Below, piece after piece: positions 15,248 to 49,225 of a stretch of DNA of 64,000 nucleotides; position 1 is the first letter of the stretch, and the number at the start of each line of letters is the position of its first letter. Source of the DNA: Dicyema japonicum. Taxonomy: Eukaryota > Animalia > Dicyemida. The notes under the pieces are model-generated. The model was given only the letters and a program-made list of their open reading frames with translations. It had not been told where the DNA came from and ran no database searches. A program made the translations under genes and the position numbers. The stretch lies in contig RDEW01000016.1 in the NCBI GenBank assembly GCA_011109175.1, positions 1,113,653-1,177,652 of the forward strand, in the 5' to 3' direction.

Positions 15248-17635
15248 TCAAAATGATTTTAAAAAATCTAGACTAGGGAATAAATGACGTTTTCTGTAAA
15301 TTTAGATAAAATGATTAACTTTTTGTAAATGTAAACTCCAACAGCAATTAGTCCAGCCGCTATAACAGCAAAGAATAATCCAACTCCCAGAGCTACGCTA
15401 TTCGACTTTTTAGCTACAAATTAAATAAAATTTAAACAGGCAGAGATGTTACCAGTAGAGGCTAAATTGTTAGGTAAAATAGAAACAGCGTGACAACGTT
15501 TGAGTGGTAGTTGATGGTTGAGTTGTTGTGGTCGTCGTAGCTGTGGAAGTCGAAGTGGTCGTTGAAGATATTTTTGAAGTTGTTGAAGTCATTGTTGGAA
15601 CGTCTAAAACACTCAATTAAAAAACATACAATCTCCGACGCAAATAGCGACCTTTTTATTTTTGCATGAATCAGTAATCCATGTTTTATTGGGAAGTATA
15701 GCAACGCATGAAACTAAAAAGTCGATGATTTTTGGTTCGCCGGGAGCCCAGTTTGGTGTGTTCTATAATAAATAAATAACGAGACAGATGGGGTATTATC
15801 CAACCAAGTTGACTTTGTGCCATTCCACAAAATTCTATAGTCTATGTGAAATGTAGAATTAATAAGATCTTCGAAATATTCAAAAACAATTACAATTGTC
15901 GATTTGGTTAAATGTATAAGAATCTGTCTCTTTTATGAGAGTCTGCCCATAATACGCGCAAAGTCTAGTAGAATCGTGATAGCTAAGAGGACGTCCAAAT
16001 AAGGAATATACAGAAGAACCAAGAGTAAAAGAATATGCTGTTTTAGGTTTTTCTAAACATTATTAAACCACAGACCATAAAAATTAGTTGAACAATTAAT
16101 AGTCGAAGGTTCACCTCTGTAGATTTCACGACAGGCAAAGGTTGAGGGTTTGCAAACATCGTTTTTCCATTTCCCAGAGTCGTATTGAGCATAAACACAT
16201 CCTTTATCACTGTTAGAATTAGGATATCCGGAAGCCCAGTTTGTGTATCTCTAAAATAACTATTATAGTAACATCTTTAAATCCATCCCCTCGAACCAAT
16301 ACTTTTTTAACATAAATTATTCCGTAATTCAAACCAATCGTGAATTCGGAATTTTCTTAAGTAAATATTTTTAATAACCCATCACTGCACAATTTTCTAA
16401 ACTGTTACGGGGAACAAAAAGAACGTCACCACGACGACTGCACAGAGTTTTCGCTTCTTTCTGAGTTTGTATAAAATCAAATATTCTAATAGAATACGTT
16501 TCATATTTAATTATCTGGGCAAAGTAATCTCAAATGATATTAAATGTTTACTGTGTTTTCTTTCATTGGTACAATTAGCAGGAACAGCATCCTTAACCAC
16601 AGTATCTAAGGAATCATACTCTAATGTACCTGTTTCACAGATAATATTATTTTCTGCTGTACAATCTTGTGTGCTGAATTCACCAGTTAGGTGACTCCTA
16701 ATAACACAAAGTTCTTTTTGTGGGTGACCAGGTAACCACGGAAGATATGACTGCTTGTAATTTTAACGTATAACCGCATGATATCCTTTAACAGTAATGT
16801 ACTCATTATTCATGTTTCTAATTCCTGTATAAACAAATCCGTGATTTTCAGCTACAAGTAAATATTAGTTTTAACTATTAATAGCACAGTTTTCTAGTCC
16901 ATCGTTAGGAATGAAAACATATCCATTGTGATCATTTTTGCAGATTCGAGAGATATGCTCGTAATCACGACTGACCTTATAAATGTAATACGAGTGTCCT
17001 CTGAATGTGAGAATATCATCGTATTTGACTGAAAAAATATCACATAGTACTATTTATAATTTTATCCGTCGTAATGTTGATTCCGATTGCTGAGATAGAA
17101 TCTATTATGATATTTTTGATAAATTACCATTCTCGCACATGTACAAGGATCGATACAAGCGGGTTATACCTTTCCATTTTCCATTGACAGCACTTATCAT
17201 GGCGCTAGTGTCCTCATATACAAGTCCTGGTTCAAAATTAGTGTATGTCTACATATCATTGTATATTACGAGTATTTTTTCGGTATGAAGTGAGTAAAAT
17301 TGATCATCACCAGTTTTTCTGCCAATACCGATTATACGATCATTTTTCAGTAAACCTTAAAATTTAAATTTAAAAATAAACTAAAAATAAAATTATTTTC
17401 TTTGCCATCCTGAATGTCCACAGCATAGTGATCATTAAAGCCGCATACATAATCCGCCCATAACGCATGTACATTCATCGGACCCAAAAAATATGAGTGA
17501 TTATTGTAGTTGAAAATTCGCGAGTATGGGGCACCTTAAGATATGACATATGGAATTACCAGAAGTCAAGAAAAAAAATAGGAATCCTAAAATCAATTAA
17601 AATTTTATCAAACCGACTAAAAAGTTGAAAAGCAT
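15248..17635 (-). CDS. Type I membrane protein with four C-type lectin-like domains, Thr/Ser stalk, TM (paralog A, apparently intact, ~19 introns)
   Basis: Manual splicing of 21-39 nt GT-AG introns gives an open frame: signal peptide MLFNFLVGFLFFFLTSG, CTLD motifs (TNWASGYP..CV..GKWKNDVC..FAC; NWAPGEP..C..W...C..C), TTTSTS stalk, TM VALGVGLFFAVIAAGLIAVGVYIY. Confidence 0.88.
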
Positions 17636-17819
17636 TTTGCCAGTTTAATTGTATGCCAATTTATATATTCAAAGAAAGCCAAAAATTTGATTTGCGGTCT
17701 TTTATTATTTTAATTTTATTCGATAATCGTGACAGACGTGATAGGATTTTACCTTGATTGATTTTTGAACAAATAGAAATTAAGAGTCAACAATTAAATG
17801 AATTTATAAGCCTGATTGC

Positions 17820-18450
17820 ATGGCTTTCCCTATCAAAACTCCTCGAATAGCCAGCGGCGCTCGCAAAGATCACCAGAACACGCGGAAATCTGATTCCCAA
17901 ATTGACTCAATTTCTAGCTTAGAGGGTCCAATGGTATCGGAAGTTTACACAGCAAAAAGAGTAAACATCACTATATTTTTGAATTAAAAATTGAATTAAC
18001 GTCATTAACGTTTCTAATTATCGTCGGACACTGTCCTTTCATCAATGACCTCGTTTTGACCTCCAAAAATATTGGATTCTTGTCACTCCTGGTATAATAT
18101 TTCACTAACAGTCAATAAGAAGGCTAGGGATGGAGATGACAGTGAGATGTTAATGGATGAAGGTTTGATGTTCTTGTATGGAAAGCCAGATTGTTGATTA
18201 TGCAGAGACTGTGAAAGTCCTCAATTCGCATCTTCCCCTTTTTTCATATTCTTGTCTTTCAACCACGATGGATGCTTTGCATTAAAGTTACACAGATAAT
18301 CACATCTTTAGTGAGGTGAGAAAATCTGGGAGCACGGGAGGAGCGAGAACTCAAAGACGGGAGATATTCATTGACCAATGTTATTGAAAGTCTGGAAAAT
18401 CGGACTTTAGTAGCCACAAGTTCGAGATTTCACTAGTTGTGGAGCAGACC
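17820..18450 (-). mobile_element. Ingi/Vingi-like LINE remnants (APE fragment joined to 3' end)
   Basis: 18020-18160 clearly homologous to 51770-51900; IGPSKLEIESIWE resembles the family C-terminus. Confidence 0.6.
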
Positions 18451-18559
18451 ATAGACCAGTAATTCTCAAAGTTTTTTTTCGTCGCCCATTTTGAAATTTC
18501 ACCCCCCATGAGAAAATTTAACTTTTTTATAATTTTATTAGATTAATACTCATTTATGT

Positions 18560-20070
18560 ATTAAGTTCGTTAACGAATAGTTTTATTGAAAATGCAATAA
18601 TCATTAACTAATGTGATCCTCTAAACTGATGCTTTAAGCCAACATTTCAGTATCTGTTTTGATTCGACTTAAATAAGTTGAATATCACAACTCTCTATGT
18701 ATTTCTTATTTGATAACCAGTCAACCTAGATAAGTCAATTTTTAACCTCAGTATGAAATAGTATGTACATATCCGCACAATGCAAAATTTCTTAATACAG
18801 GTTTCATTAAGTTTGCTGGACATAATATTGGAAACAAGATTATGCCGATAAAGACATTGTAGACAGATTATTCCAGGACATAATTCTTTAAAAATTATGT
18901 AAAACCTTTGAACTTTCCAACCATCAAAATGGCTCCATCCATCGCTATCGACAGTAGATTTTCTAATGGAATATCAACAAAATAATTCTTCATTAAAGAA
19001 AACATCTCATTTCCAGTTTATCTAACATCAGTTGTTTAACAAACAGTAATTTTTTCTAAAGAATATAATAATCGTCTAACAATCTAATATGTTATATTTT
19101 ATTATTTATACCTGAAAATGCCAAAAAATTGTTGATTGTCACAGATTAGTTGCTTATCTATTTGAAGTAAAAAACTTCGTTTTTCTAATACAGTCGACCC
19201 GGACAAACTGGACAGTCTTTAAATTGGCTTTCTAAGAAAAATCCTATTCTCTATTAATTGGCTAATTTTTAAATTTCCCACAATTTTTCAATTTAATTTT
19301 TAATACAATTTGAAAAATAAAAATTTTAACACATGTCTTCCAATGCTTCTCGTGTACGCTATACTCTACTTATTATAAATGAAAAATTTAAATTGTAAAT
19401 TATAAATAATAAATGATGCTATTTCGTGCCAATAGTTGACTGATAATTAAATTTTATTTTATAAAAACTTAAATACGTTTTTTCTTCATTGTAAGGAATT
19501 TTAAAAATTCTTTGTTCATTGTTCTTCAAAATTATTGATTGTATTTTTTTCAAACTGGCGACAAAATTCTAAGGAATCAAAAATGGCCAATTTGCGAGGG
19601 TCGGCTGTATATGAATTAATTTACATATTTATTCGCATTTCGTCGATTCTTAGACGGATGGAATCATTGCTGAGTAGAATTTTTTCGATGAGACTCACAA
19701 CATCCGATAATATCAATTTCAGTGATGGAACAATCACTGACTCTCCAATCGTATGGGGACAGCCTGTTTTTGACACCAATTCGAATATTTTACGGGGTTT
19801 ACAGTCCTTCTAAAAAATAACTAAAATGCTAGCTATTAGTTTGCAATGTATGCTTTTTGCATTTTTGTTTGATTGTATAAAGTAAAAATAGTTTTCGCTT
19901 AGTTTTTCAAAATATTTGATGTTTGTCAAGTTTAGACGAATGCTTTTCGCAAATACTGCAATATTCTTGATGGCTTCATTTGACAAAGTAATAATGCCAT
20001 GTTATGATTTGTTTCATTAATGGGAATTTGGAATGAACCAAAATGATAAGAATCTGGTTCGGTGATTACG
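18560..20070 (-). mobile_element. hAT (Buster/Charlie, ZBED5/8-like) transposase pseudogene
   Basis: PEYLSF, LSNEA, LVSKTGCPHTIGESVIVP..LSNDSIRLRIDEM, IPLENLLSIAMDGAILMVG; interrupted near 19190-19500. Confidence 0.75.
19191..19500. repeat. MITE-like AT-rich insertion (related to ~38850-38950)
   Basis: Starts TA|CAGTCGACCC (pogo/Tc1-like terminus); shares aaaaatcctatt..attaatt.gc.aatttttaa with 38885-38930. Confidence 0.45.
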
Positions 20071-20459
20071 GACTGAACTCATTATTATTATCGGCAGCGC
20101 TGAGAACACATAAAAACAAAAAGTCAATTAAGGTTCCCTTTTTACCGCCGGACACCCTTGTACCAGTCTCATACAAGGTCCCTTTTTTCGCAAGTCCTCT
20201 TGAATTCATCGATATCGTTTGCGTATCTAATTTTCTGCCGAAGCCTTTTAAGTCCTTCTTTAGCACAGAGTTGTCTGGAACTTTCTAAGAATAATCTTTT
20301 TTGTTTCAAGAAATATTCGCCATCAAACGATTTCTGGTACGTCCAGTCTCAAAATTTTACCGAACTCGATCTCTAGATTTCCTAGATATTGGTTCTTGTT
20401 ACATAATTTATATAATTTTGTGTTATTGATCTTATAGTATATCGTATATTGAGTACCTT

Positions 20460-21590
20460 CCGGAGCATGATGCGGTGAAAGCTGTCAATTAACTCCATAA
20501 CCTTTTTGATAAGTCCCATGTCCCACAATATAAATTAGAATGGGCAAGACAAATCATTTTATATCTTTACTTTTCCACTGAGTTTTCTACCCGAGCGACA
20601 CATTTTTCTAGCTTTCTGAAAGCATTCTGAAGCAAGAATTTTTTAACCGGGTACATCTTTTACATCCCCCAAGAGCGATCTAACCTGAAACCTTGCCAGT
20701 CAGCTTTCAAGTAATTTTTGAACTTTGTAGAACAGCACGGTGAACAAATAGGCCTTCTGAGTTTCAACACAATAAGGTTATGGTCGATTGAGAAACCATA
20801 ACAAACATTCTAAGAAATACATCCAGCCATAGAAGGAGAGCAGAGGGACAGGTCCGGGGATGTTCGACTGCCCCTTCTTCGGGACGGGGTCCTTGTGTGA
20901 GCGTCCCGGTCAGTCAAATCATTAAGTAAGGAAAGGATGTACTCACCGCGACTGTCGGCTGATTGTGTCCGAAGCCAGAGTGGATGTTTGGCATTTAGGT
21001 CTCCACATAGTAGCTGATCCTTTAGTCCACACAGTCTCAATAGGTTGGGGATAGGAAGTAGTAATGACCCCTGAGGTGGGATATAGACATTACACAGTGT
21101 AAACATCTCGTCGAAGAAAAGGGAACTTCAATAGAAATTTGTTCCAGAATAAGAATTCCTTCGCAGAAAGAAGATACAGAAGGGGTGACATCCGTAAATT
21201 TAAGTCCATCCTTAACGATTTTCAATAATCCTCCTCCGAGACTTCTTGTTCGGTCCCTGCGAAGTACACAATATCCAGGAAAACAAGGTGTTGGGGACTT
21301 TATAGAGAGCTTCGATTCTTGAATGAGGGCAATGTCCACTCTCAAATGGGATAAAAAGGATCGTAATTCCAACACTTTATTGCGGATTCCATTTACATTT
21401 AATTGTAGAATAGTCAGCGTGCAGTTGGGTCCCGGTTCTACATCACCAGACAGAAGTAGTAAAGAAAAAACGGGGGAGTTGGTAAGCCACCCTTCTAAAG
21501 ATCACAGAAAGGTAGGGAAAGTCGAACGGTTCTTTCCATGCAAAACTTGCAGTGAGTGCCACCACAACAACATGTGAACCGCATGACGCC
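20460..21590 (-). mobile_element. Ingi/Vingi-like LINE 5' half (APE)
   Basis: LLLLSGDVEPGPNCTLTILQLNVNGIR..VDIALIQESKL..LCGDLNAKH..TSPDLS. Confidence 0.85.
21511..21589 (-). ncRNA. Candidate structured RNA at LINE 5' end, copy D (degenerate)
   Basis: P2 GCGGTTC/GAACCGT, CAC..GTG, GGTGGCAC, CATGGAAA junction, TTTCCCTACC box. Confidence 0.6.
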
Positions 21591-21679
21591 ACGCTAAATC
21601 AAATCTGTTATCGGTATACAAAATGTTAGTTATTGAATTTTATATATGTTATCCGTATACAAAATGTTACTCGAACAGC

Positions 21680-22400
21680 CTTTCAATGGACGATATGCGG
21701 AAAGCTATTCAAAACCAGAAATCGTTTTTCGCAATGGTCCAGATGGAATTCCCTCTATTGTACTTAAGAAAATAGGCCCCTACACCCTCTTGGCCTTGAT
21801 CAGAGTTTACAACCTCTCCTTCAGTAGGAACTCGATTCCTACCCTATGGAAATTATCCCATATTCGGCCCATCTTAAACCCTGGATGGCCGAAGGACTCA
21901 ACAGCTTCGTACTGACCAATATCCCTCCTGTGTGCCACCTCCAAAATCCTAGAAAAATTCATTCTCGATCAGATTAAACTTTTTCCTCCCAGACGTATCC
22001 TTCCAACATGGCTTTAAGAAGGCTCGTTCCACAACTACCCACCTTACTTGCTTGACAAAATTCATCAAGGAATACCTTCAACGAAGACCTCGGCATCAAA
22101 ACACCATTATGTTTTCCATTGACATACAGAAGGCTTTTGACTCAATACCGAAAAAACTGCTCACTAGGAAGATTTATAGCTCTAACATTCCGAACAAGCT
22201 TAAAATTTGGCACGCTAACTTCCTCAACGGACGAAGAGTAATTTCCCATTCCACATCTTTAGTCAATAAATTTCAACCGAACAGGGTCCTGCAAGGATCC
22301 CCTCTTTCTCATTCTTTTCAACTTATTTATGAGCGACATGCCTTCCCCACACCAACCTAAAGAAAATAAATTCTTTCAAGAGACAGTAACAAAGACCCTA
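21680..22400 (+). mobile_element. Ingi/Vingi-like RT fragment
   Basis: GPDGIPSIVLKKIGP, PISLLCATSKILEK, QHGF, DIQKAFD. Confidence 0.8.
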
Positions 22401-22439
22401 CAAAATAATCCTCCTTGATGTTAAAACCAACCCCGTTCG

Positions 22440-22680
22440 ATAAACTCGTGAGGAATACGGGAGCTCTGCCAAAGCCTCTAAACCTCCAAAAAGTCACTCG
22501 TCCACACCGAAAGTGTGTAGGCACTCGGGAGGAACACCGAAAAAAGATGAGGCTCAACTTTCTGGATGAGGATCTCAAGGCAATCAACCGGAGGCTCGTA
22601 AGTGGGAGGATCTGGATGCTATGATAAGTTTTCTGTGTAACAGGGGAGGATGGACGAGATTGATCCGAAAAATTGCTTTA
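22440..22680 (+). mobile_element. RTE 3' end fragment
   Basis: FLDEDLKAINRRL..EDLDAM, RTE C-terminus. Confidence 0.6.
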
Positions 22681-22900
22681 AGTGCCGCACGTGTGAAAAT
22701 ATAACAATTATAAATCTACAATAGTTGCCTATAATAATGATGGCTTGCTAAAACAAAAGGTAACCGCAACTTCGTAAAATGAGAAGGTAGATAAGAAGAT
22801 AGGTTATATATTATTTTGTGGTAAAATACTAAAACATAGCTTGTTAAAAATAGAAAAATGAATAGAATCGAATAAGTATTAGTGAAATGAGATAGTAAAT

Positions 22901-25332
22901 TTAATGGTCAAAACTTCGGGCTAAAAAATTTAAATAATAAAGAAACTTCGGAAGCTACCAAATGACCTCAAAGATAATGGAGCTGAAAATGAATAACCTC
23001 TTCTGTAAATTTAAAGAAAATGATTAACTTTTTGTAAATGTAAACTCCAACAGCAATTAGTCCAGCCGCTATGACAGCAAAGAATAATCCAACTCCCAGA
23101 GCTACGCTATTCGACTTTTTAGCTGCAAATTAAATAAAATTTAAACAGGCAGAGATGCTACCAGTAGAAGCTAAATAGTTAGGTAAAATAGAAACAGCTT
23201 GACGACGTTTGAGTGGTAGTGACAGTCGAGGGTTGAGTTGTTGTGGTCGTCGTAGTTGTGGAAGTCGACGTGGTAGTTGAAGAAATTTTTGAAGTTGTTG
23301 AAGTCATTGTTGGAACGTCTTTATCATTCAAAAAAAAACTATCTCCGACGCAAACAGCGACTTTTGTATTTTTGCATGAATCAGTAATCCATGTTTGATT
23401 GGGAAGTATAGCAACGCATGAAATTAAGAAGTCGTCACTTTTTGGTTCACCGGGAGCCCAGTTTGGTGTGTTCTATAATAAATAAATAACGACACAGATG
23501 GGGTATTATCCAACCAAGTAAACTTTGTGTCATTCCACAAAATTCTATAGTCTATGTGAAAGCTAACATTTATGAGATCTATGGTTAATCAAAACATTTA
23601 CATTTATTGATTTTTTCGAATGTATAAGAGTCTGTATCTTTTATGAGTGTCTGCCCATAATAAGCGCAAAGTCTAGCAGAATCGTGAAAGCCGAGAAGAC
23701 CACCGAATAAGGAATATACAGAAGAACCAAGAGTAAAAGAATATGCGGTTATAGGTTTTTCTAAAAATTATTAAGCCACAAACCATAATAATCAGTTGAA
23801 CAATTTATAGTCGATGGTCTACCTCTGTTGTTTTCACGACATGCAAAGGTTGAGGGTTTGCAAACATCGTTTTTCCACTTCCCAGAGTCGTATTGAGCAT
23901 AAACACATTCTTTATCACTGTTAGAATCAGGATATCCGGAAGCCCAGTTTGTGTATTTCTAAAATAACTATTATAGTAACATTTTTATTTCCATCCTCGA
24001 ACAAATAAATGTTTAACATAAAATACTCCGTAATTCAAACCAATCGTAAATTCGGAATTTTCTTAAAATAAATATTTTAATAACCCATCACTGCACAATT
24101 TTCTAAACTGTTACTGGGAACAAAAAGAACGTCACCACGACGACTGCACAGGGTTTTTGCTTCTGTCTGATTTGCTTCAAAATCAAATATTCTTATAGAA
24201 TATGTTTCATATTGTATTATTTGGGCAAAGTATCCTAAAATGGTATCCTACCGTTACTTTGTTTTCTCTCATAGCTACAATTAGCAGGAACAGCATCCTT
24301 AACCACAGTATCTAGGAATCATACTCTAGTAGACCTGTTTCACAGATAATATGCTTTTTGCTGTACACTCTTGTGTCTTGAATTCTCCATTTATGTGACT
24401 TCGAATTACACAAAGTTCTTTTCGTGGATAACCAGGTAACCACGGAAGATATGACTGCTTGTAATTTTAAAGTATAACCGCTTGATATCCTTTAACAGTC
24501 ATGAATTTTTTTATATTTGTGATTCCAACATAAATAAAACCATGATTTTTGGCTATGAATTACTATTTATTTGAACAATTTATAGCGCAGTTTTCTAATC
24601 CGTCGTTTGGGATGAAAATATATCCGTTGTGGTCATTTTTACAGATTTGAAGGATATTTTCGTAATCCCGATATACCTTATAAATGTAATACGAGTGTCC
24701 TCTGAATGTGAGCAAATCATCGTATTTGACTATAAATTATGTCACATAGTACTATTAATAAATTTATCCCCTGTAACGTTGACTCCGTTTGATGAGATAG
24801 AATCTATTATGACATTTTTGATAACCATCTCGCATATGTATAAGTATGGATACCATCGGGATACACCAGTCCATTTTCCATTAACCTCATTTATTAGCGC
24901 TCTAGTGTTGTAATATCCAGGTTTTGAACCAAAATTATTGTATGACTACATATTATTGTATAATACGAGTTTTTTGTCAGTATGGAGAGTGGAATATTCA
25001 TTATCCCCATAATATTTCCCAATGCCGATTAAACGATCATTTCTCAGAACACCTTAAAATTAATATTATAATCTATACTGAAAATAACTTTATTTTCTTC
25101 GCTATCTTGAATATCCACAGAATAGTGTTTATCATAGCCGCAGACTTCATCTAACCAGTATCCATATGCTGTTCTTGAAGAAAAGTAATATGAGTGATTA
25201 TTGTAGTTGAAAATTTGGGAGTATGAGGCACCTTAATGTAAGACTTATGAGATTACCAGAAGTCAAGAAACATAGTAGGAATCCTAAAATCAATTTAAAT
25301 TATATCAAACCGACTAAAAAGTTGAAAATCAT
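22901..25332 (-). pseudogene. Four-CTLD membrane receptor paralog B (frameshifted)
   Basis: Nearly identical to paralog C over ~2.57 kb but with -1 (~24830), -1 (~24359) and -2 (~23995) indels relative to A and C. Confidence 0.75.
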
Positions 25333-25659
25333 TTGTCAGTTTAATTGTATGCCAATTTATATATTCAAAGAAAGCCAAAAATTTGATTGTGGTCTAAATT
25401 GCAAAACATTTGCTTTTGTTTTGATTCAGCTAAAATTAAGAAAACTGTTTAATATATTTAAAAAAATACTATTTTTGTATTTTCTGATATTGTAAGCAAT
25501 TTCACAAACTGTCTTTCTGTTGGAAATTTTCAAAGAAAATCTTGAGTCTCAAGATATGAACATTTTCTACGAAACCAAAGTAAAAGATTTTAGTATATTT
25601 AATAGTTATGCGACACAACCAGTTGTAGGTAATCATGTTTTAGCCTCCAGCAGTTTGTC

Positions 25660-35256: not shown

Positions 35257-35329
35257 TAATCACAAATATAGGCTAATTAGCACGAAACAAACACATATTA
35301 ACTTCAATGATAGTCATTCTGCATTCACT

Positions 35330-37990: not shown

Positions 37991-38647
37991 ACCAAAAATA
38001 TATGTGAAAACAAAGTAACTTCTGTTTTATCAATAATTCTAGATTTAATATCTCATCAGCTGTTGATTTTCTTGTGACCTAACCATGGTGGTAAAACATA
38101 ATATCTAAATAATTTATATAGATTTTTCAGATCAATAGCGTCACTAAATTTTTGAAAAGTAAAAACAAGTTTTTTTTTAATTTTCTCTTTTCAGCACCTC
38201 CTCTAGACACATATAGTTTTTCCATGTGCTGAATAAATTCTCAATTGAGAAATGGCGAGTAAAGGGTAATGGAACACGGAGATTGTCCATAAAATGATAA
38301 ATAAAGGAATTATCAAAGATATCGGGTCTTCAATTCCCTCTTCATAACACAGATTTTTTAAGGATTCCAGAAAAATTAGTCATTTAAGAAAATTCTGGTT
38401 CTGATAGCCCCTACAGGAATATAGGTAGAAGATTATGAAACAACTCTTCCTCGTCTTGGTCTTTAGGATACTGAAACTCCTGCTCGAAAATGTAAAAATA
38501 ATGGCAAAATACCAGGGAGTATAAAAATTGGTTCAAATTTTTGTGATATTATAATTGTATGATCTTATAATTCATATTTAATAATAATTGAATTTGAATA
38601 ATTCAAAAATGTAATTTTAAACTAATTCATTAATAATTAAAAAATGC

Positions 38648-38815
38648 CACGGGAGGGACTCTGGTTGAGGCAGAGGCTCGAAATGGCGATTATCAGAGGT
38701 AACGCCTTCGCTATTCTGTCGTCCTAATTATTGCCTAATTTTCATTATTAAAAATAATTGTATTCATTATAAATACTATAATTTGTTTAACCACAATCAA
38801 TAAAACGTGTTTTAT
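38648..38815 (+). mobile_element. CRE 3' end fragment (second family)
   Basis: REGLWLRQRLEMAIIRGNAFAILSS* parallels WLFQRISLAVVRGNSHSII of the 51.5 kb copy. Confidence 0.7.
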
Positions 38816-39657
38816 TTAGAGTCACATCAAATCAAAATACACTTGACCCTCTCAAATTGGCCTCATTTTGAAAACTTTTCTTTGAAAAAATCCTATTCCC
38901 CTTATTAATTTGCCAATTTTTAATTTAATTTTTAATAAAATTGTAAAAAAATGACCATTTACTCACTTCTTTCATAAATAAAAAAGTATTATTCAACAAT
39001 TTCCCCTTTTGACCGGATTGGGTATACAGCCAATTTTAATAAAATTTTCTGTTTTTATGCTCGAAATTTATTAGATTGATTTCGTAGATAAAACCAACTT
39101 TTCCAACTCTATAATAAATGCATTTAAAAAACTCAAAATAGCTTCGGTCAAGTTACTTTTGCATAAATTTTCTACACTTTTCATAGAAGTAAAACGATGT
39201 CCTATACCATCAAAGCAAGTTTTGTAAAATTTACTGTTCAACTTATGCAAGGAAAAAACATATTCGACTAAACATCAGTGACCTCTTTGATCCTAGAGTC
39301 GGTGAATGGAATGAGAAAATCAGATTTTTTACAGTAGCACCTGTGAAATACTAATAAAAATGATAAACCTGCTAGTTTGAAATATTTCGTATACAAAAAA
39401 TTCAATAAAAAGATGTTAGAAAATTCGTGAGTTGTAAGAAAATTCACCAGACGTTTTCTAATAACATTCTTAAGCTTTTCAATGACCCTCCTTATTTGAT
39501 TGCGGCATAACAGTTGATGGACACGTATTTTATTCAAAATCTCTAAAAATTAATAAATTAAAAATCAATAAAAATTTTGACTTTTTTTGACTTCATAACT
39601 TTTGATTTATATAAAATTTTGGATTAAAAATCACATTTTTATTAGTTTTTGAATTTC

Positions 39658-39730
39658 ATGCCGTGTGACTCGCCTATATGGTGGCATCGCTCACTTGAAG
39701 TGTTGGAAAAGAGTCGCAAACTTCCTATCC
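39658..39730 (+). ncRNA. Candidate structured RNA (pseudoknot) at LINE 5' end, copy E
   Basis: P1 ATGCC/GGCAT, P2 TGTGACTC/GAGTCGCA, P3 GCC/GGT, P4 CACT/AGTG, TTGGAAAA junction, CTTCCTATCC box. Confidence 0.75.
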
Positions 39731-39737
39731 CACAACC

Positions 39738-39803
39738 ATGGACGCGGGATGGTGTCGACTCCTACTTCTTTCCTTTGGAGATGTCGAAGAAAATCCTGGA
39801 CCA
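39738..39803 (+). other. N-terminal 2A-like peptide MDAGWCRLLLLSFGDVEENPG|P
   Basis: ATG in strong context (ACCATGG), full DVExNPGP consensus, in frame with APE start. Confidence 0.85.
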
Positions 39804-42239
39804 GATCTAGTCATATTACTAATTAACATCAATGGTATCCGAACAAAAATTGCCGAACTACAACGCTTTCTCATAAAACACTAAGTGGATATAGTCACTC
39901 TTTTAAGAGACGGAACTTAACCCACGGCGACCAACTCCGAACCTTCCGGAATACTCTGTTTTAGACAAGACAGAGGTCATGGAAAGGGAGGAGGCCTTAT
40001 TTCTCTACTCAGGAAGCATATAATGGTCGGAAATATCTCGGACGACATCCCGGACCCATCCCGCCAGGACGACACACTGGAACATCTAACTCTAAGAATA
40101 TGTCTACCCTCTATCCGATTGACAGTTATCAATATGTACATACTCCCTCCACCGTCATGCCCCAGCGGCTACAGCCCCGAACTCAAGCGATTCACCAGGT
40201 TAGAAAACACGCTAATTGGCGGTGACCTAAATGCGAAGAGTTCTCAATGGTATGCTGACCAACAACTGGACCAACGGGGAGCCCTCATATCCGACAGTTT
40301 TGACGACTTGATCATTCTCAATAATCCAAGCAAACACACAAGGTCCCCTTCCCGTCGAGGCGACTCCTCTACTTCACCAGACATTTCTTTTGCTGCCCCT
40401 TTTTTTGCGGCTGTTATTTCATGGGATGTTATATACGATACCGACCATAACCCGATCTTCATGAGGATCCAACAAAAACATAAGTTAATGAACACTCCAA
40501 GAACCAATGTGAACTTCACAAAGGCAATGTGCCTTCACACATTTTACCGAACTACACCTCCAGACCTTCCGGATAGAGAACTTAGGATCTATCGACGCTG
40601 CTGTCAAAACCTCAACGAGATTATACTCCGAGCTCGCAAAAGATACATTCCGATGAGTCGTCCTCAACGTCCATCACACCCAATTGATGCTGAAACGCGT
40701 GATCTAATCCAAACGAGAAATAAGCTGAAGAATTTCGAAAGACAATCAGTGGACGTAACTGAAAGAATATCAAAACTGAACAAAGAAATCACGCGGAACA
40801 TCACAAAACACAACAAAGAACGTTGGGAAGCCTTGCTCAGAAAAGCTACGAATAATGCTTCCCCCACTGTATTATTGAAGTTGATAAAGAGGCTCAAGAG
40901 TACTCTCCAGATATAATTGACATCAAGAGCTATATCCAAATCCCAATGACATCATGAAGTACTATGTGAATATTAGTCATAAACCATATTCAATGACCTG
41001 GATGTTCGTTCTGGCAATGGTCGAAGGAATAAATGTCCCAACATGACTTTCTTCGACCCTTCAACGGTGCACTCAGTAATCAGCAAAATGAATAACTCGT
41101 CGTCCCGCGGTTCAGATGACATCTCTATTCTCGAACTAAAACACCTGGGTCCTTTTCGCGACGGCCGCAATAACAAAAATTTTCGACCTCTCAATAAACG
41201 AGAACAAGATTCCGTAAATATGAAAGAAATCTCTGATACACCCATCCTGAAGAAAAACAAACTGCCCGTCCTCCTACCGCCCGGTATCCATCATCTGCGC
41301 CTTATCACGAGTGTTAGAAAAACTGGTCCTTCTCAAGATCCGTCATTTCATAACTTTACCATCTTTTCAACACGGATTCCGCGAAGGACACTCAACAACA
41401 ACTCATCTAACAAAACTGGTTCAATTCATTTCGGACGGCCTGAATACCCAAAATTTACACGAGAAAACCGTGCTAGTCTTAGTGGATGTGGAGAAGGCTT
41501 TTCACTCAGTATCTCGGAAGATCCTTACACAAAAATTTTTACGACGTCGATCCACCCTAAATTCAAGTCATGGTTGGCTAACTTCATCGGCAGTCGAATG
41601 GGGCAAACAACCAAAAATCAAAACCGCGATACCTTCCAAATGGAGTTCCACAAGGATCACCGTTGTCTCCAATGCTTTTCAACATGTTCATCACCGACCT
41701 ACCATCCTTAACCACCAAAAACACAATTCTTCTATTGCATGCGGTTGATATCGTGGTCGCAGTGAAACATCGAAGAATCGAGGAGGCGACACGATCCGTG
41801 CAACACTTACTAAACCAGATGGGTCTTTGGTTCCTGAGAACCGTTTGAATATATCACCAGGAAAGTCACATGTAATGACGTTTACCTCAGCACGATAAGA
41901 TCTATGGGCAACACCACGAATAAAATTGTATGATTCTCCGCTTTCCATTAAGAAGACCCTTTCAATCCTTGTAGTCATCCTGGATTTCCTACTCACATTT
42001 ACCCATCAAGTGGACCTAGTAGCCCCGAGGATCCAAAAGAAAATTGGAATTCTCAAGGCTTTCACTCACTCTCCAGTATCTTCCCGCCCATCGTTAGAGC
42101 TTCTATACAAACAATTTGTTCTACCTAGTATCGAGTACGCCTGTGCTGCATGGATTGCCCCCTTATCAATATTGGCACAGAGCAAGCTGAAGGTTTTACA
42201 AAATCTATTTCTCAGGATTCTATTGAGATCGTCTTAAAA

Positions 42240-43480
42240 GGGAGTGCGGAAAAAAAGTAAAGTCGTCTTTTTTAGTTTATATCGTATTTTTATAGCATTA
42301 ATAGCATCTTTTAATTTTTAATATTTTTTTCAACACTTGACTTTTTTTCCATTTGACTTTTTTCCAATTATCTTAAATTTTCGCTTATAAATTTTCGAAA
42401 TTTAGCGCAAATCGGAAAAAAAAGTCAAGTCTGTGATATCGTTAGCGGACTAGACTTTTTTTCCCGTTTGGTATAATCGCTTTGACTAAATCAATTTAAG
42501 AATTTCAAGGTAATAATAAAATTGACTTGACTTTGGTTCGCTTTGGTTTAATCTTTTTGACTTGATATACGGATTCAAGGTTATAATTATGCTTGCCGCA
42601 AAAATAAGAGACAAAATGGAGATAATATCAACTAAAAAAGAGGAAAGAAAATTTGTTTTAAGCGTTGTATGTATACAAAGCGCTCGGTGACAAAAAACTA
42701 CATAATTTTTAAATGGGTGAAAAATCTTCACAAGGATGCAGAGGACACATAAGAATAGATCATAATTTTGGATTTCCCAAAGAAGGAATCTCTCACAATC
42801 ACGAATTTAACGAAAGTCAAATAAAACTGATGAAATTGTGCAGCAAGGCAAAACTTATTGCTAAAACGAGTCAAGAAATCCCTTACAAATCTATTCAAAA
42901 GTTGTGTCTCAATGTGAAACAACAACCAGAATTATCTCCTTCTGCAGATTCTTTTAAGTGAACACTAAGGAATCAACGCTTGTCTCTACATATTCCAAAA
43001 AATATTTTCGATCTCGGAGATATTCCATCGTCTTTATCTTTAATCCTTGGTCCAGATTCAGAAATTTTTTTAATTTATGATAATCATAGAAGAACCGATA
43101 GAATATTAATATTCAGCACCAAAACTAATTTAACGTTATTGGCGAATTCAAAATCATGGTATATGGATGAAAATTTCTCTATGGCACATTTTATCAGGAT
43201 TCAGTTCAATGCCAGTGCAATTACAGTTGTTTATGGAATATTACCTTCTAAATCACGATAGATTTACGAAGAATTTTTTGAGGCTATTCAAATGCAATTC
43301 ATAATTTGAATTTGGAATTTTGTCTTGAAACTATTATGGCAGACTTTGAAGATTCGGTATTTCGAGCTGTCCTTGCAGTATTTGGGAGACGAATACATAT
43401 TAGGGGATGTTATTATCATCTAAGACAGTCAACTTGGAGAAAAATTCAAGAATTGCATCTAGTAAAACAAATCTAGTAAA
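42240..43480 (+). mobile_element. MULE transposon fragment
   Basis: Terminus GGGAGTGCGGAAAAAAAGT with AAAAAAGTCAA/TTGACTTTTTT subterminal repeats; ILIFSTKTNL..SWYMD, DFEDSVFRAV..GCYYHLRQSTWRKIQ. Confidence 0.75.
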
Positions 43481-43519
43481 CAATCAAGGCCTCACGTGGA
43501 TGTTAAAAATATGATTTTT

Positions 43520-44250
43520 TCAATAATAATAATTATTATTAACCCAAGAACACCAATAGTTAATTTAATTACTAAATTAATTGTCCTTGAAGGCCTCAAT
43601 CAAATTCCTCATCCTCTCATTGTGCGCCTTCTGGGATCCAACGCAAATTCTCTGTGGGCGGGATGATTTGGGGAATAGAAATTAGATAGGGGTGGTGTAT
43701 ACCCTTCTCATAAAACACGTTTTGGTTGTGTACTGCTGGGTGTTGCACTGCCTGCACAGGATAGAAATACCTTTCTATTTTGTCGAATAAGGTCTTCAAG
43801 TAATGAGGGAATTAGTTTTTCTAGTTTCCCGAGATTACTAATAGTAGTGGTTGTCAAGGCCTGAAAGTCCCGGATTCTTTGTTTGTCCTTCTAGGACAAA
43901 TTGATTCTCCATGACGTGACAGATGGCTCAATGAATTGTTTGTACAACAATTTCAAAGCTAGAAAGTTGTTTTAATGCTACCGAAAATAGTTTTGATTAT
44001 CCCTAGCTTTTTTGAGCAGCTTCCAAAGATGCCGTCGACATGAAATGAAAAGTACATTTGTGTGTCGATTTTCAGTTTTTTTTGTGAAATGTATTTTGTC
44101 TGGTTGATAAATATATCCACTGTCATTTGTCCAAGTCGTTTGTCTGAGGTAAATAAGGAATAAGATTTTTCAGTAGATATATCAAGTCGGTTATAGTTTA
44201 GCCAAATTTGAATCTTGTGAAGGTATTCTTGTAGTCATTCTGATGCCTTT
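43520..44250 (-). mobile_element. LINE 3' fragment
   Basis: LLYKQFIEP-like motif, ends gggttaataataatt. Confidence 0.6.
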
Positions 44251-44259
44251 AAGAGATCT

Positions 44260-46350
44260 TGATCGTTGGATCCGATTAATAGGTCATCAGCATACGATAG
44301 GAGGAAATCCTCAGCTTATTTAAGAGAAAAGCACTTTACTGCTCTCCAGGTAAACATAAATAAAATTAAAGGAAAAATCAGGGAACTTCGCTCACTCATG
44401 GCTTGTCAGAAGATCAACGTGGAGATGATTCAAGAGAATAAACTCACTTTTAATGACCCTACCCCTACATTCCCAGAATACAAGGCTATCAGAATGGACC
44501 GTAAAGGTAGAAGAGGTGGAGGTCTACGCACTCCATTCAAAAGAACTTGAAATGCAGAGACATTTCCTCGGAAGTGAGAAAACTTGTTGGGGATGATGAT
44601 GTTGCCGAAATAATTGGAATTTCGCTCGGGACAACAAAAGGAAGACTATGCCTTTGAATATCTACGTTCTGCCTCCTGGGTTTCATGCCCGAAAAGTATG
44701 TTGTGCCAAACCTATCAAGACTGTCTTCTATCGATGAGATCATCTTTTGGGGGAATTGAATGCAAAGCATCCCTTGTGGCTGTCAACTCAACTATCTGAC
44801 ATGAGAAGGTAACTATTGTTATCCCAAACGGATTCCCTAACGACATCGAGCGATCCATCGAGAAATACAAGGACACCACTGAGAGAGACAGATAAATTTA
44901 CCTCACTGGACGTAACACTCTCTCATCGTCGCTTTCATCAAAAACTGATTGGTCTGTCCTCTACGAAACAAGAAACGACCATAATCCAATTTTGGTGAAG
45001 ATCAAAAGAGAGGCCAACGTGAGGAGAATTATCAAACTACATGCTGCCTCATCACTAAACAACATTATAAGCAGTTCTCTTTGTTCATTCAGGAAGCTAG
45101 AAAATTATTTATTCCAATGGGAAGACAACAAACAGGCGATTCAATTCAACAGCAAACATTTAGTCAAGAAAGAAAATATTTAAAGAAAAAAACATACCGT
45201 AGAAGGAGGATACAATAAGAATTCTTACACTTAACAAACAGATTAACAAATATATCAGTAAAACAAACGATAAACATGGACAGAACTATCAAAAGTCCTA
45301 ACAGAAAACCCGTCAGTACAGAAGGTCTGGAACAAAATCAAGTCTACCAAAAGGTCTTTGAACTGCAAAATGGGATATCATTACAACCAAACATTTTAAT
45401 GAAATACTATGCTTCCATAACACATAAAACTACTCCAAAAAACACTAAGTACTCTTAAACAGAATAAAACCGAAATACATGTGGACCATATTTACGGCGA
45501 AGGACGTCCAGTGGGCAATATAAAGGCCTGAAACTCAAAAGCCCGAGGTCCAGACAATATTTATACAACAGAACTAAAGCATATATGACCACTTGCTTTA
45601 GATTTGTTTGTTTACATATTCACAATATCAATAAATATGAAAATTATTCCGGATGTCTGGAAGAGAACATACATCAAACCGATGTTGAAGCCAGGGAAAT
45701 CCGAAAATGACTCCTCTTCCTACAGACCAATCTCGATCATATGTTCATATTCCCGAATACTCGAAAAATTAGTTTTTGAAAGTATCAAAGACTACATCCT
45801 TTGCAACGTGGATTCGGAGCTAAACACTCCACAGCAACATACCTAACGTCCCTGTGCCGATTCATTGCGGAGGGAATCAATTCCATTAAACCACACCAAC
45901 GAACAGTCTTGGTCACTGTTGATATAACAAAGGACACAGTCTCAAGAAAACTCCTTACTGATAAAATTTACGAGTTTGTCAAGCCGACGTTGCTGTATCC
46001 AAGTGAGGCTTGGTCTTTGTTTCAAGAACATCGACCATCAAATATTCAAAAGGCCGCAAGGACTATTATCGGCCCAACATTCTTCCCTATATCTACAGAA
46101 GATCTTTTCATCCAAAAACAAAGAATTCTCATCAGAGAAGCAAGGATACCAGATCATCCTCTGCAAGAGCTACTCATCTCATAAATCCATGACAAGCAAG
46201 AGATATGAGGCGAAGCCCTGACCTTTTAGAAGGGCAATTCTGGACGCTCGTTCCCGGAGGACCCAGGTGTCGGTTTGGGATAACTTAGTTAGTTAAGAAC
46301 ATTCTTTATTCTTTTAACCCGATGATCCTGGGACAATAATAATAATTTTA
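44260..46350 (+). mobile_element. Ingi/Vingi-like LINE, heavily decayed with internal deletions
   Basis: ALQVNINKIKGK, MIQENKL, WKRTYIKPMLKPGK..SYRPISI; 3' end gatgatcctgggacaataataataat. Confidence 0.75.
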
Positions 46351-46785
46351 TGGCACACTCTTCTTCTAAAAGAAGAATAGGGATTACCATCAATCTGGAT
46401 TAAAATCCACTTAATTAGTTGATTTACTCGTTAATTTTCAATCATAAGATAAATTTAATTTAACTCATTAATAAAATGACCCTTCAATTAAAATGGCATT
46501 TTATAGAAAAAATTGTTATAATTTTGAATCATAAATTTGTTTCTTGGTTTAACTTTATTAATATTTGATTAGTTTTTGGGTTTGATGGCAAATAAAATTC
46601 TCTGTTTGGTTCACTAATGTATCATTGATGGCTTTTAAAGCAGAAGGTTAGCCACTTCGTAAAATGAGAAGGTAGATAAGAAAATAGTTTATATATTATT
46701 TTGTGGTAAAATACTAAAACATAGCTTGTTAAAGATAGAAAAATGAATAGAATCGAATAAGTATTAGTGAAATGAGATAGTAAAT

Positions 46786-49225
46786 TTAATGGTCAAAACT
46801 TCGGGCTAAAAAATTTAAATAATAAAGAAACTTCGGAAGCTACCAAATGACCTCAAAGATAATGGAGCTGAAAATGAATAACCTCTTCTGTAAATTTAAA
46901 GAAAATGATTAACTTTTTGTAAATGTAAACTCCAACAGCAATTAGTCCAGCCGCTATGACAGCAAAGAATAATACAACTCCCAGAGCTACGCTATTCGAC
47001 TTTTTAGCTGCAAATTAAATAAAATTTAAACAGGCAGAGATGCTACCAGTAGAAGCTAAATAGTTAGGTAAAATAGAAACAGCTTGACGACGTTTGGATG
47101 GTAGTGACAGTCGAGGGTTGAGTTGTTGTGGTCGTCGTAGTTGTGGAAGTCGACGTGGTAGTTGAAGATATTTTTGAAGTTGTTGAAGTCATTGTTGGAA
47201 CGTCTTTATCATTCAAAAAAAAACTATCTCCGACGCAAACAGCGACTTTTGTATTTTTGCATGAATCAGTAATCCATGTTTGATTGGGAAGTATAGCAAC
47301 GCATGAAATTAAAAAGTCGTCACTTTTTGGTTCACCGGGAGCCCAGTTTGGTGTGTTCTATAATAAATAAATAACGACACAGATGGGGTATTATCCAACC
47401 AAGTAAACTTTGTGTCATTCCACAAAATTCTATAGTCTATGTGAAAGCTAACATTTATGAGATCTATGGTTAATCAAAACATTTACATTTATTGATTTTT
47501 TCGAATGTATAAGAGTCTGTATCTTTTATGAGTGTCAGGCCATAATAAGCGCAAAGTCTAGCAGAATCGTGAAAGCCGAGAAGACCACCGAATAAGGAAT
47601 ATACAGAAGAACCAAGAGTAAAAGAATATGCGGTTATAGGTTTCTCTAAAAATTATTAAGCCACAAACCATAATAATCAGTTGAACAATTTATAGTCGAT
47701 GGTCTACCTCTGTTGTTTTCACGACATGCAAAGGTTGAGGGTTTGCAAACATCGTTTTTCCACTTCCCAGAGTCGTATTGAGCATAAACACATTCTTTAT
47801 CACTGTTAGAATCAGGATATCCGGAAGCCCAGTTTGTGTATTTCTAAAATAACTATTATAGTAACATCTTTAAATCCATCACCTCGAACCAATAAATGTT
47901 TAACATAAAATACTCCGTAATTCAAACCAATCGTAAATTCGGAATTTTCTTAAAATAAATATTCTAATAACCCATCACTGCACAATTTTCTAAACTGTTA
48001 CGGGGAACAAATAGAACGTCACCACGACGACTGCACAGGGTTTTTGCTTCTGTCTGATTTGCTTCAAAATCAAATATTCTTATAGAATATGTTTCATATT
48101 GTATTATTTGGGCAAAGTATCCTAAAATGATATCCTACCGTTACTTTGTTTTCTCTCATAGCTACAATTAGCAGGAACAGCATCCTTAACCACAGTATCT
48201 AGGAATCATACTCTAGTAGACCTGTTTCACAGATAATATGCTTTTTCGCTGTACACTCTTGTGTCTTGAATTCTCCATGTATGTGACTTCGAATTACACA
48301 AAGTTCTTTTTGTGGTTGACCTGGTAACCACGGAAGATATGACTGCCTGTAATTTTAAAGTATAACCGCTTGATATCCTTTAACAGTCATGAATGTTTGT
48401 TTTATATTTGTGATTCCAACATAAATAAAACCATGATTTTTGGCTATGAATTACTATTTATTTGAACAATTTATAGCGCAGTTTTCTAATCCGTCGTTTG
48501 GGATGAAAATATATCCGTTGTGGTCATTTTTACAGATTTGAAGGATATTTTCGTAATCCCGATATACCTTATAAATGTAATACGAGTGTCCTCTGAATGT
48601 GAGCAAATCATCGTATTTGACTATAAATTATGTCACATAGTACTATTAATAAATTTATCCCCTGTAACGTTGACTCCGTTTGATGAGATAGAATCTATTA
48701 TGACATTTTTGATAACCATCTTCGCATATGTATAAGTATTGATACCATTGGGATACACCAGTCCATTTTCCATTAACCTCATTTATCAGTGCTCTAGTGT
48801 TGTAATATCCAGGTTTTGAACCAAAATTATTGTATGACTACATATTATTGTATAATACGAGTTTTTTGTCAGTATGGAGAGTGGAATATTCATTATACCC
48901 ATAATACTTCCCAATGCCGATTAAACGATTATTTCTGAGAAAACCTTAAAATTTAATATTATAATCTATACTGAAAATTACTTTATTCTCCTCGCTATCT
49001 TGAATATCCACAGAATAGTGTTTATCATAGCCGCAGACATTATCTAACCAGTATCCATTTGTTGTTCTTGAAGAAAAGTAATATGAGTGATTATTGTAGT
49101 TGAAAATTTGGGAGTATGAGGCACCTTAATGTAAGACTTATGAGATTACCAGAAATCAAGAAACATAGTAGGAATCCTAAAATCAATTTAAATTATATCA
49201 AACCGACTAAAAAGTTGAAAATCAT
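46786..49225 (-). CDS. Four-CTLD membrane receptor paralog C (apparently intact)
   Basis: Manual splicing of the same micro-intron set gives an uninterrupted frame from MIFNFLVGFLLCFLISG to the TM and tail RRGYSFSAPLSLRSF. Confidence 0.88.

Follow-up and report, generated by a model that had tools for sequence, protein, structure and literature searches.

The mannose receptor family (MRC1, PLA2R1, LY75/DEC-205 and MRC2/Endo180) consists of type I membrane proteins in which N-terminal ricin-type (cysteine-rich) and FN2 domains precede 8–10 tandem CTLDs; the majority of these CTLDs lack sugar-binding residues, and the cytoplasmic tail is short. Vertebrate NK-cell CTLD receptors (Ly49/KLRA and NKG2/KLRC), each a type II protein carrying one CTLD, are encoded in multigene clusters that evolve rapidly by birth and death: pseudogenes arise, paralogs exchange sequence by gene conversion, and the ligand-binding CTLD is variable. 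Positive selection is documented at their contact residues. Snake-venom C-type lectin-like proteins (bitiscetin, flavocetin, EMS16 and factor X-binding protein) are secreted as loop-swapped heterodimers of single-CTLD chains, whose CTLDs bind proteins and no longer sugar. The predicted proteins of the dicyemid family described here are likewise type I, with tandem CTLDs, mostly without sugar-binding residues, and a short tail; they differ from mannose receptors in having four CTLDs, in lacking both N-terminal domains and in an added mucin-like stalk. Multigene turnover, pseudogenes, paralog exchange and a variable CTLD are shared with Ly49 and NKG2; unlike those receptors, the dicyemid family consists of type I, four-CTLD proteins and is not demonstrated to be under selection above neutrality. 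The beta chains of the snake-venom proteins were the best matches in the PDB to a profile of the N-terminal exon of the second domain (exon 7), a weak similarity (E 0.002 over 29 residues), and the dicyemid domains are tandem and membrane-anchored.

The window, a stretch of 64,000 nucleotides from Dicyema japonicum, which is indeed a parasite as had been supposed from the letters alone, contains three paralogs on its minus strand, with blastn extents of 15279–17700 (A), 22738–25395 (B) and 46626–49228 (C). B and C were 97.8% identical over 2605 nt, and A was about 86% identical to each of them. Every copy comprises 20 exons separated by 19 introns of 21–27 nt; each intron is GT..AG, and all 19 are kept in 3/3 copies. 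Outside the stalk, the indels that distinguish A from B and C all lie within predicted introns. The manual model of A was reproduced independently by a spliced aligner guided by C, with 0 frameshifts and 0 stops, and the ORFs of both A and C run unbroken through the 20 exons. The earlier note had placed A exactly (ATG 17635, stop ending 15248), as it had the starts of B (25332) and C (49225), and all of the peptide strings that it quoted were found in the spliced models; the modelled stop of C, at 46815, falls 29 nt before the end it gave (46786). Splicing of the micro-introns and expression of the copies are predicted from sequence conservation only. Coordinates are collected in Table 1.

Table 1. 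Features of the paralogs and their surroundings, in window coordinates
Feature	Position	Strand	Description	Basis
Copy A	15248..17635	(-)	intact, 20 exons and 19 introns, 642 aa	manual model
A, D1	17132..17532	(-)	aa 18-135, exons 3-5	hhalign to D2 profiles
A, D2	16634..17051	(-)	aa 154-269, exons 7-9	
A, D3	16125..16573	(-)	aa 282-408, exons 10-13; six Cys	
A, D4	15637..16094	(-)	aa 419-547, exons 13-16	
A, stalk, TM helix and tail	15248..15636	(-)		translation, hydropathy, composition
Copy B	22930..25332	(-)	pseudogene in present assembly	three-way alignment and translation, spliced aligner
B, upstream	25333..25395	(-)	~65 nt 5' of B start codon	blastn extents
Copy C	46815..49225	(-)	intact, 653 aa, 20 exons as in A	
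C, D1	48721-49122	(-)		
LINE-type retrotransposon ORFs (reverse transcriptase and endonuclease)	9011..12380	(-)		Pfam, ORFs
Second LINE-type element	40023-41711	(+)		Pfam, ORFs

Copy B is unable to encode the protein because of frameshifting deletions near 24831 (1 nt, exon 5), 24360 (1 nt, exon 9) and 23996 (2 nt, exon 12); three frameshifts were also reported by the spliced aligner. An additional in-frame deletion of 3 nt lies near 24511, and 19/19 splice-site pairs are retained. The sequence immediately upstream of B is near-identical to that upstream of A (17636–17700) and unlike that of C, with A agreeing with B at 23 of the 28 sites in the 5' flank at which B and C differ. This A-like flank indicates that the duplicated unit shared by B and C starts at the ATG. 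The copies had been described as dispersed, which holds at the scale of the genome; within the window they form a loose same-strand cluster that LINE fragments interrupt, with gaps of 5 kb and 21 kb between copies. The LINE-type elements matched RVT_1 (E 7e-32), Exo_endo_phos (E 9e-10) and Exo_endo_phos_2 (E 1.5e-7). By eye, ORF fragments resembling reverse transcriptase were also seen between and beside the copies, at 19.5–22.4 kb and 45.8–46.2 kb. The proposed TE-rich compartment is not a distinctive feature of the locus, as 49% of the whole D. japonicum genome is reported to be repeats (Lu et al. 2019).

Both A and C encode a signal peptide, four CTLDs (D1–D4; three had been counted previously), a Thr/Ser-rich stalk, a TM helix and a short tail. 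In A, the stalk is 62% Ser+Thr and the TM helix spans about aa 599–623 (15337–15411). The claim that the TM segment is identical among copies applies to A and B, from both of which C differs at one residue. Each domain is built of three exons of ~150, 80 and 120–175 nt, in a recurring 1, 0 pattern of intron phases. With its micro-introns read through, D2 of C (48223–48555) scored 28.1 bits on Pfam Lectin_C (PF00059), for which the curated cut-off is 22.6 bits, and domains of paralogs scored 26–27 bits. Taken exon by exon, D3 and D4 stayed below this threshold at 16–19.5 bits, exon 13 (D3) at E 0.02 over profile positions 68–100 and exon 16 (D4) at E 0.002–0.003 over positions 70–106. No direct match of D1 to Pfam was found; its assignment as a CTLD would follow from profile similarity to D2 (hhalign probability 96.9%, E 2.4e-10, full length) and from the common exon pattern. 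The corresponding probabilities were 97.1% for D2–D3 and 90.9% for D3–D4. Between C and the other paralogs no exon is better conserved than exon 7, and 5/5 of its near-full-exon matches put through Pfam, from a library of 1.84 billion representative proteins, carry Lectin_C; the exon-level profile search of that library returned nothing closer than 43 bits. Each of D2–D4 is predicted to have five or six cysteines in the expected positions and a core of IG or WIGL-like type, and D1 of A has the outer pair alone (C47 and C134). The Pfam match together with this cysteine framework and WIGL-type core, in D1 the outer pair only, argues for membership of the CTLD superfamily, and the earlier view of a multi-CTLD type I protein family, probably at the cell surface, is supported.

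The sugar- and calcium-binding motifs EPN, QPD and WND are missing from their canonical positions in A and C, as had been noted. The equivalents of EPN/QPD are EPG (D1), HPQ or QPQ (D2), YPN or YPD (D3) and EPK (D4), and those of WND are WKG (D1), F-S/K-T (D2), WKN (D3) and WIT (D4); a WND string at aa 492 of C belongs to a different strand of the domain. Neither A nor C thus has the primary Ca2+ site motifs of Ca2+-dependent carbohydrate-binding C-type lectins. Since the four domains lack these residues, their ligands at the parasite surface are more likely to be proteins or other non-canonical partners.

The family was followed through the genome (67,542,437 bp in 377 contigs; published as 67.5 Mb in 377 scaffolds, Lu et al. 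2019) with exons 7 and 13, which located at least 23 loci on 14 contigs. Four CTLDs were present in every modelled paralog. Lectin_C matches split by micro-introns of the same kind number at least 51 genome-wide, and the layout of four CTLDs, stalk and TM helix is common only to the loci found with the two exons. Loci L031 and L034 carry 7–10 frameshifts each, L021 and L023 carry 5–10 frameshifts or stops, varying with the guide, and in most of the others one or more apparent frameshifts fall inside D1–D4; part of these could be assembly errors. Beside a 3-kb N gap, contig C361 ends in a stretch that matches the 5' end of C at 97% and looks like a haplotig.

In Table S3 of Lu et al. 2019, a cluster of 15 copies named 'macrophage mannose receptor' (OG_10592) stands among endocytosis-linked families, and the four-CTLD family is probably this cluster. 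On one reading, the proteins would be endocytic receptors of the mannose-receptor type through which the peripheral cells draw nutrients out of the urine of the host, with D1 variability incidental. The multi-CTLD type I architecture agrees with this in outline. Against it, the identity with OG_10592 is presumed, the signal peptide of exons 1–2 runs directly into CTLD1 with no ricin-type or FN2 domain between them, there are four CTLDs in place of 8–10, and no domain has an EPN or WND sugar site. A genome search with PF00040 (FN2) gave no match, but control genomes were equally silent. By eye, none of the endocytosis motifs YxxPhi, NPxY or [DE]xxxL[LI] (di-leucine) was seen in the 16-aa tail of A or in that of C, which is about 25 aa long in an uncertain model that may contain one further micro-intron. 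We consider this account rather unlikely.

Amino acid identity between A and C is 51% in D1, 78% in D2, 87% in D3 and 81% in D4, so that the heavy divergence of the first domain noted earlier is borne out, and D1 is also the most divergent domain in 3/3 subfamilies genome-wide. Across the family, non-synonymous substitutions per column amount to 7.25 in D1 and 3.4–3.5 in D2–D4, whereas synonymous substitutions are similar (2.5 and 2.4–2.9, respectively), and 38 columns of D1 have at least 10 non-synonymous changes, compared with 0–5 in the other domains. Tree-based counts gave an omega of 0.65–0.80 for D1, significantly below 1, and of 0.24–0.46 for D2–D4 (purifying selection, p down to 1e-24); ML pairwise omegas agree with this contrast. 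Taken overall, dN/dS comes to 0.55–0.8 in D1 and 0.2–0.46 in D2–D4. Within D1, variation is concentrated in four segments (aa 33–52, 80–96, 102–117 and 122–131 of A) with omega of about 1 (0.80–1.07), set in a conserved scaffold at 0.13–0.53.

Such a pattern could be read as diversifying selection on a ligand-binding tip, D1 serving a host-attachment or immune-interaction repertoire whose variants are spread by cassette exchange between paralogs. The position of segments V3 and V4 at the usual CTLD ligand-binding long loop is consistent with this, as are several young pairs with D1 omega above 1 (1.1–1.7 by ML, up to 1.9 pairwise) and D2–D4 at 0.1–0.55. One of the seven clades tested, the young clade g2b, reached 1.48 in D1 at a nominal p of 0.04, which is lost on correction for seven clades, and this clade includes frameshifted copies. 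In the window copies, D1 dN/dS was 0.55–0.57 for A–C and 0.30–0.37 for B–C, and the ratio of non-synonymous to synonymous changes did not differ significantly between D1 and D2–D4 (p=0.07). The per-domain dN/dS check on which the earlier note had staked its claim thus came out essentially against it in the window. Of the 37 exonic substitutions between B and C, 16 fall in D1, which holds 18% of codons (7 synonymous and 9 non-synonymous). The amino-acid-changing ones do cluster there, as claimed (odds ratio 2.9, p=0.025), but the synonymous ones cluster at least as strongly (5.5, p=0.003), and in the youngest pairs the two kinds cluster together. Cross-validated omega for the most variable D1 sites in the held-out class was 0.88–1.23, not significantly above 1 (p at least 0.15). 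Counting methods have limited power, and parsimony counts miss multiple hits at fast sites and may understate omega in the D1 loops. No recurrent sites of the binding domain therefore show dN/dS significantly above 1, which lowers the claim; diversifying selection on D1, possible though it is, is not demonstrated, and the reading as a whole is unlikely. The combination of a conserved scaffold with an average omega near 1 hints that some D1 sites exceed 1.

The paralogs are mosaics. L029 and L030, which lie on different contigs, are 96–100% identical over ~450 nt of D1 including introns and 74–90% identical outside this block, so that D1 has moved as a unit between them, a point also in favor of cassette exchange. 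In the youngest clade, 86 substitutions fall in D1 and 7–12 in each other domain, with synonymous changes at 18.5 and 1–5, respectively. Synonymous divergence between A and C is about 0.5 in D1–D2 and 0.05–0.24 further 3' (p=4e-6), and part of the uneven divergence is due to this mosaic history. The A-like 5' flank of B is a further sign of it.

That the copies are mostly pseudogenes or mis-assembled, and D1 variability the product of neutral decay or of a collapsed or chimeric assembly, is very improbable: the frameshifts in B and the other loci, the haplotig-like contig end and the 1.24% heterozygosity of the published assembly (Lu et al. 2019) all point that way, but A and C are intact, D2–D4 are under clear purifying selection in the same genes and branches (omega 0.24–0.46), the D1 scaffold is conserved, splice sites are kept even in B, and synonymous counts are equal across domains family-wide.

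Relaxed constraint on D1 combined with gene conversion probably offers the best fit. A, B and C would be local copies of a lineage-specific dicyemid gene family, A and C functional-looking and B dead, whose product is a putative type I membrane glycoprotein with signal peptide, four CTLDs, mucin-like Thr/Ser stalk, TM helix and short tail. The family would turn over by birth and death, through gene-sized DNA duplications that keep all 19 micro-introns; copies would be set apart by LINE insertions, often be lost through frameshifts and exchange sequence blocks with paralogs by gene conversion. D1 appears to have lost the inner disulfide and conserved its scaffold, leaving four near-neutral loop segments (omega about 0.8–1.1) that make it twice as changeable in amino acid sequence as D2–D4 at the same synonymous rate. 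Gene anatomy, the family itself, the rate asymmetry and the mosaicism are shown by the sequences, and surface location, ligand type and biological role are inferred. The receptors could serve in adhesion to the host renal epithelium or, following the proposal of Lu et al. for the 'mannose receptor' cluster, in uptake from the urine of the host.

A more speculative version, which we regard as quite doubtful, is that D1 is a swappable recognition cassette, a conserved CTLD scaffold bearing four hypervariable loops, with selection at a minority of sites and with gene conversion shuffling the block among the 20-plus paralogs. If so, a parasite of ~30 cells would possess a variant receptor repertoire, and this could be the basis of host specificity or of evasion within the kidney of the cephalopod.

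The lectin-like copies in the window (A, B and C) were modelled by reading the minus strand by hand with the three copies aligned. When the window was compared with itself by blastn, B and C were 97.8% identical over 2605 nt, and A was ~86% identical to B or C. The window is eukaryotic in character, with ~35% GC, LINE ORFs and an absence of long ORFs at the lectin loci. The resulting model contains 20 exons and 19 introns of 21–27 nt, with GT..AG at every intron in A, B and C; for intron 8, only a 24-nt version ending in GCAG worked across all three copies. Wherever A and B/C differ in length outside the Thr-rich stalk, the difference falls within a predicted intron, which gives strong internal support for the gene model. 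A custom spliced aligner, combining codon matches, GT..AG introns in three phases and frameshift states, reproduced the A model without manual input when guided by the C protein. The start and stop codons of this spliced model lie exactly at the ends of the interval 15248–17635 that the earlier note had assigned to A. The D. japonicum genome (67.5 Mb, 377 scaffolds, 36.7% GC, 49% repeats) is known to have very short introns (Lu et al. 2019, PMC6736024), and among animals introns this short occur only in myxobolid myxozoans (parasitic cnidarians) and D. japonicum (2026 paper).

Positions of lectin copies and retrotransposon-related features in the window
Feature	Position	Strand	Evidence
Copy A	15279–17700	minus	blastn, window against itself
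Copy B	22738–25395	minus	blastn, window against itself
Copy C	46626–49228	minus	blastn, window against itself
LINE-type retrotransposon ORFs	9011–12380; 40023–41711	minus; plus	RVT_1 E 7e-32; Exo_endo_phos; Exo_endo_phos_2
RT-like ORF fragments, between or beside lectin copies	19.5–22.4 kb; 45.8–46.2 kb		by eye

At 1482–2886 on the minus strand, one ORF was weakly cadherin-like (Cadherin_FAT4_N, E 2.7e-5, sub-threshold) and the adjacent ORF gave no match; both could be exons belonging to a cadherin-like gene at the window edge.

The predicted proteins of A (642 aa) and C (653 aa) each comprise a signal peptide, four repeats of about 116–129 aa, a stalk with 62–66% Ser+Thr, a hydrophobic helix followed by KK(K/R), and a short tail. 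The repeats (D1–D4, D1 being membrane-distal) number four in the spliced models and not three, as had been counted earlier. A tail ending of the 'PSL..LKSF / SLRSF' type is common to A, C and other subfamilies. B and C each contain a tandem pair of a 29-nt unit (83% match), at 22985–23044 in B and 46870–46929 in C, spanning the exon 19/intron 19/exon 20 junction, where the tail model is least certain.

Each repeat is encoded by three exons (about 150, 77–86 and 121–175 nt), the introns being in phase 1 and then phase 0. Profile–profile comparison of the family alignments linked D1 to D2 over their full length (96.9%, E 2.4e-10), D2 to D3 (97.1%) and D3 to D4 (90.9%). Read through its micro-introns, D2 of C matched Pfam Lectin_C at 28.1 bits against a threshold of 22.6, and the final exon of each of D3 and D4 gave sub-threshold Lectin_C matches at the correct profile positions. 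An exon-by-exon Pfam scan gave no match for the D1 and D2 exons, a poor yield that is explained by micro-exons too short for the model. Against the PDB, an exon 7 profile matched C-type lectin-like chains from snake venom, at their N-terminal strand and helix. Against 1.84 billion representative proteins only ten of its matches reached E 0.001 or better, none of them a close relative or a dicyemid protein; the top-scoring ones were short stretches only, and the one of these that was scanned with Pfam was a WD40 protein, but Lectin_C was present in all five of the Pfam-scanned matches that aligned over most of exon 7. Only the outer pair of cysteines is retained in D1, and none of the four domains has EPN, QPD or WND at the canonical positions, in agreement with the earlier note. 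A genome search for FN2 gave no match, with uninformative controls.

All three paralogs are real and had been located with remarkable accuracy, but copy B is a pseudogene in this assembly. Compared with A and C alike, it has lost 1 nt in each of exons 5 (near 24831) and 9 (near 24360), 2 nt in exon 12 (near 23996) and, in frame, 3 nt near 24511; its splice sites are undamaged. In the ~65 nt upstream of the ATG, B (25333–25395) is near-identical to A (17636–17700) and unlike C, indicating that the duplicated B/C unit starts at the ATG; its 3′ end lies ~190 nt beyond the stop, without poly(A). Retroposition or LINE 3′ transduction was rejected as the mode of duplication, as the homology ends on the 3′ side without poly(A) and every intron is kept. 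The near-identity of the A and B upstream regions, seen despite a coding dS of 0.15–0.5, reflects conservation of a promoter-proximal element or else local conversion between the two neighbours, which lie 5 kb apart.

A genome search with either the exon 7 or the exon 13 peptides gave 23 places on 14 contigs, with local clusters on contigs C68 (three copies), C112 (six), C345 (three) and C334 (two). Twenty-two loci were extracted and modelled, and 19 of these share the four-CTLD, transmembrane layout and the intron positions; these 19 and the copies A, B and C fall into three subfamilies. The three loci left out were a truncated pseudogene, a more distant gene of different layout, and a fragment on contig C361. 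Second-pass models built on paralog guides carried guide errors, and statistics were taken from the first-pass codon alignment. Two loci (L031 and L034) contain 7–10 frameshifts, two more (L021 and L023) contain 5–10 lesions (frameshifts or stops), the number varying with the guide, and most of the remainder have one to three frameshifts within D1–D4. Such widespread lesions point to a birth-and-death family, though some could be assembly errors. Locus L035 (G000:C321:150600-155600), which matched peptides of exons 3 and 13 but aligned poorly to the four-domain guide, is a more distant relative and may have a different domain arrangement. At least 51 Lectin_C matches were seen across many contigs, mostly broken by in-frame stops from micro-introns, and for a genome reported at ~5,000 genes there are unusually many CTLD genes, of several architectures.

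Mean identity within the three subfamilies was 0.43, 0.53 and 0.59 for D1 and 0.63–0.81 for D2–D4. Changes were counted by codon parsimony on domain-specific FastTree trees, with opportunities weighted by kappa and base frequency. Non-synonymous changes reached 7.25 per column in D1 versus 3.4–3.5 in D2–D4, and synonymous changes were equal (2.5 versus 2.4–2.9). The variability lies in four segments of D1 (V1–V4; A residues 33–52, 80–96, 102–117 and 122–131) with conserved scaffold between them. Domain 1 is therefore hypervariable in amino acids, as first proposed. The B/C differences clustered there had been taken as amino-acid-changing, but synonymous differences are concentrated in D1 as well (7/14, p = 0.003); most of the B–C differences in D1 are derived in C.

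Blocks of sequence also move between paralogs. Between A and C, dS was ~0.5 in D1–D2, 0.18 in D3, 0.24 in D4, 0.14 in the stalk and 0.05 in the transmembrane segment (p = 4e-6). In the youngest clade, 86 substitutions fell in D1 versus 7–12 in each other domain, with synonymous changes also raised in D1 (18.5 versus 1–5). Loci L029 (G000:C1:2268321-2273321) and L030 (G000:C345:730371-735371) are 96–100% identical over ~450 nt of D1 exons and introns and 74–90% identical over the remaining gene, with unrelated flanks, which makes this a clean inter-paralog conversion tract. This tract and the uneven divergence imply that, unless the alignment is partitioned for recombination, divergence by region is no guide to selection. 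A donor for the C-specific D1 changes was sought in the assembly, and nothing nearer was found than B and the C361 fragment, which equals C at the sites covered, in the 5′ part of D1. The last 1.2 kb of that locus (L036; G000:C361:131005-136005) is 97% identical to the opening 291 nt of C and ~890 nt of its upstream flank. This contig-end copy adjoins a gap of 3,079 N and is probably an uncollapsed haplotype (haplotig) or a truncated extra copy.

For D1, omega (dN/dS) between A and C was 0.57 (NG86) or 0.55 (ML), versus 0.23–0.42 for D2–D4, and between B and C it was 0.30–0.37; among the window copies the N:S ratio of D1 versus the other domains gave p = 0.07. Family-wide, omega was 0.65–0.80 in D1, significantly below 1, and 0.24–0.46 in D2–D4. 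When the top 30% of D1 sites by variability were defined in two subfamilies and measured in the third, omega for this held-out class was 0.96, 1.23 and 0.88, none significant. The V segments gave 0.80–1.07 and the D1 scaffold 0.13–0.53. Young clades had D1 values of 0.7–1.0, except for one at 1.48 (p = 0.04, uncorrected), a clade with frameshifted copies. Micro-intron divergence was also tried as a neutral yardstick (flat JC distances of 0.21–0.31 from D1 to D4 and 0.07 in stalk/TM, below dS in D1–D2) and was dropped, as the trimmed introns of 11–17 nt are probably constrained. The diversifying selection proposed for D1 is thus not borne out by the family-wide and held-out values. A minority of D1 sites may nevertheless be positively selected, since counting methods are conservative at fast sites; ML values of 1.1–1.7 for D1 in several young pairs are in line with this. 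Overall, the D1 pattern is better explained by relaxed constraint on loops combined with gene conversion than by diversifying selection.

Table S3 of Lu et al. (PMC6736024) contains a 15-copy 'macrophage mannose receptor' cluster tied to endocytosis, which is probably the present four-CTLD family; if so, its expansion was already noted in the genome paper. That table was the only relevant item in paper searches on Dicyema or dicyemids and lectins, which yielded nothing on the four-CTLD family; nor do lectins come up in the other dicyemid genome paper.

The earlier interpretation was therefore half right: the genes are a parasite's surface multi-CTLD family whose distal domain evolves fast, and diversifying selection is the less favoured reading. 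The analysis gives the gene structure behind 19 micro-introns, the four-domain architecture, the distinction of live from dead copies, the location of the variability and the movement of D1 between paralogs. Dicyemids are extremely reduced, highly host-specific parasites with a reported gene number of only ~5,000. With more than 20 surface lectin-like receptors, the family is among the few expanded ones in the D. japonicum genome, making it a concrete candidate for attachment, feeding and host recognition in the cephalopod kidney.
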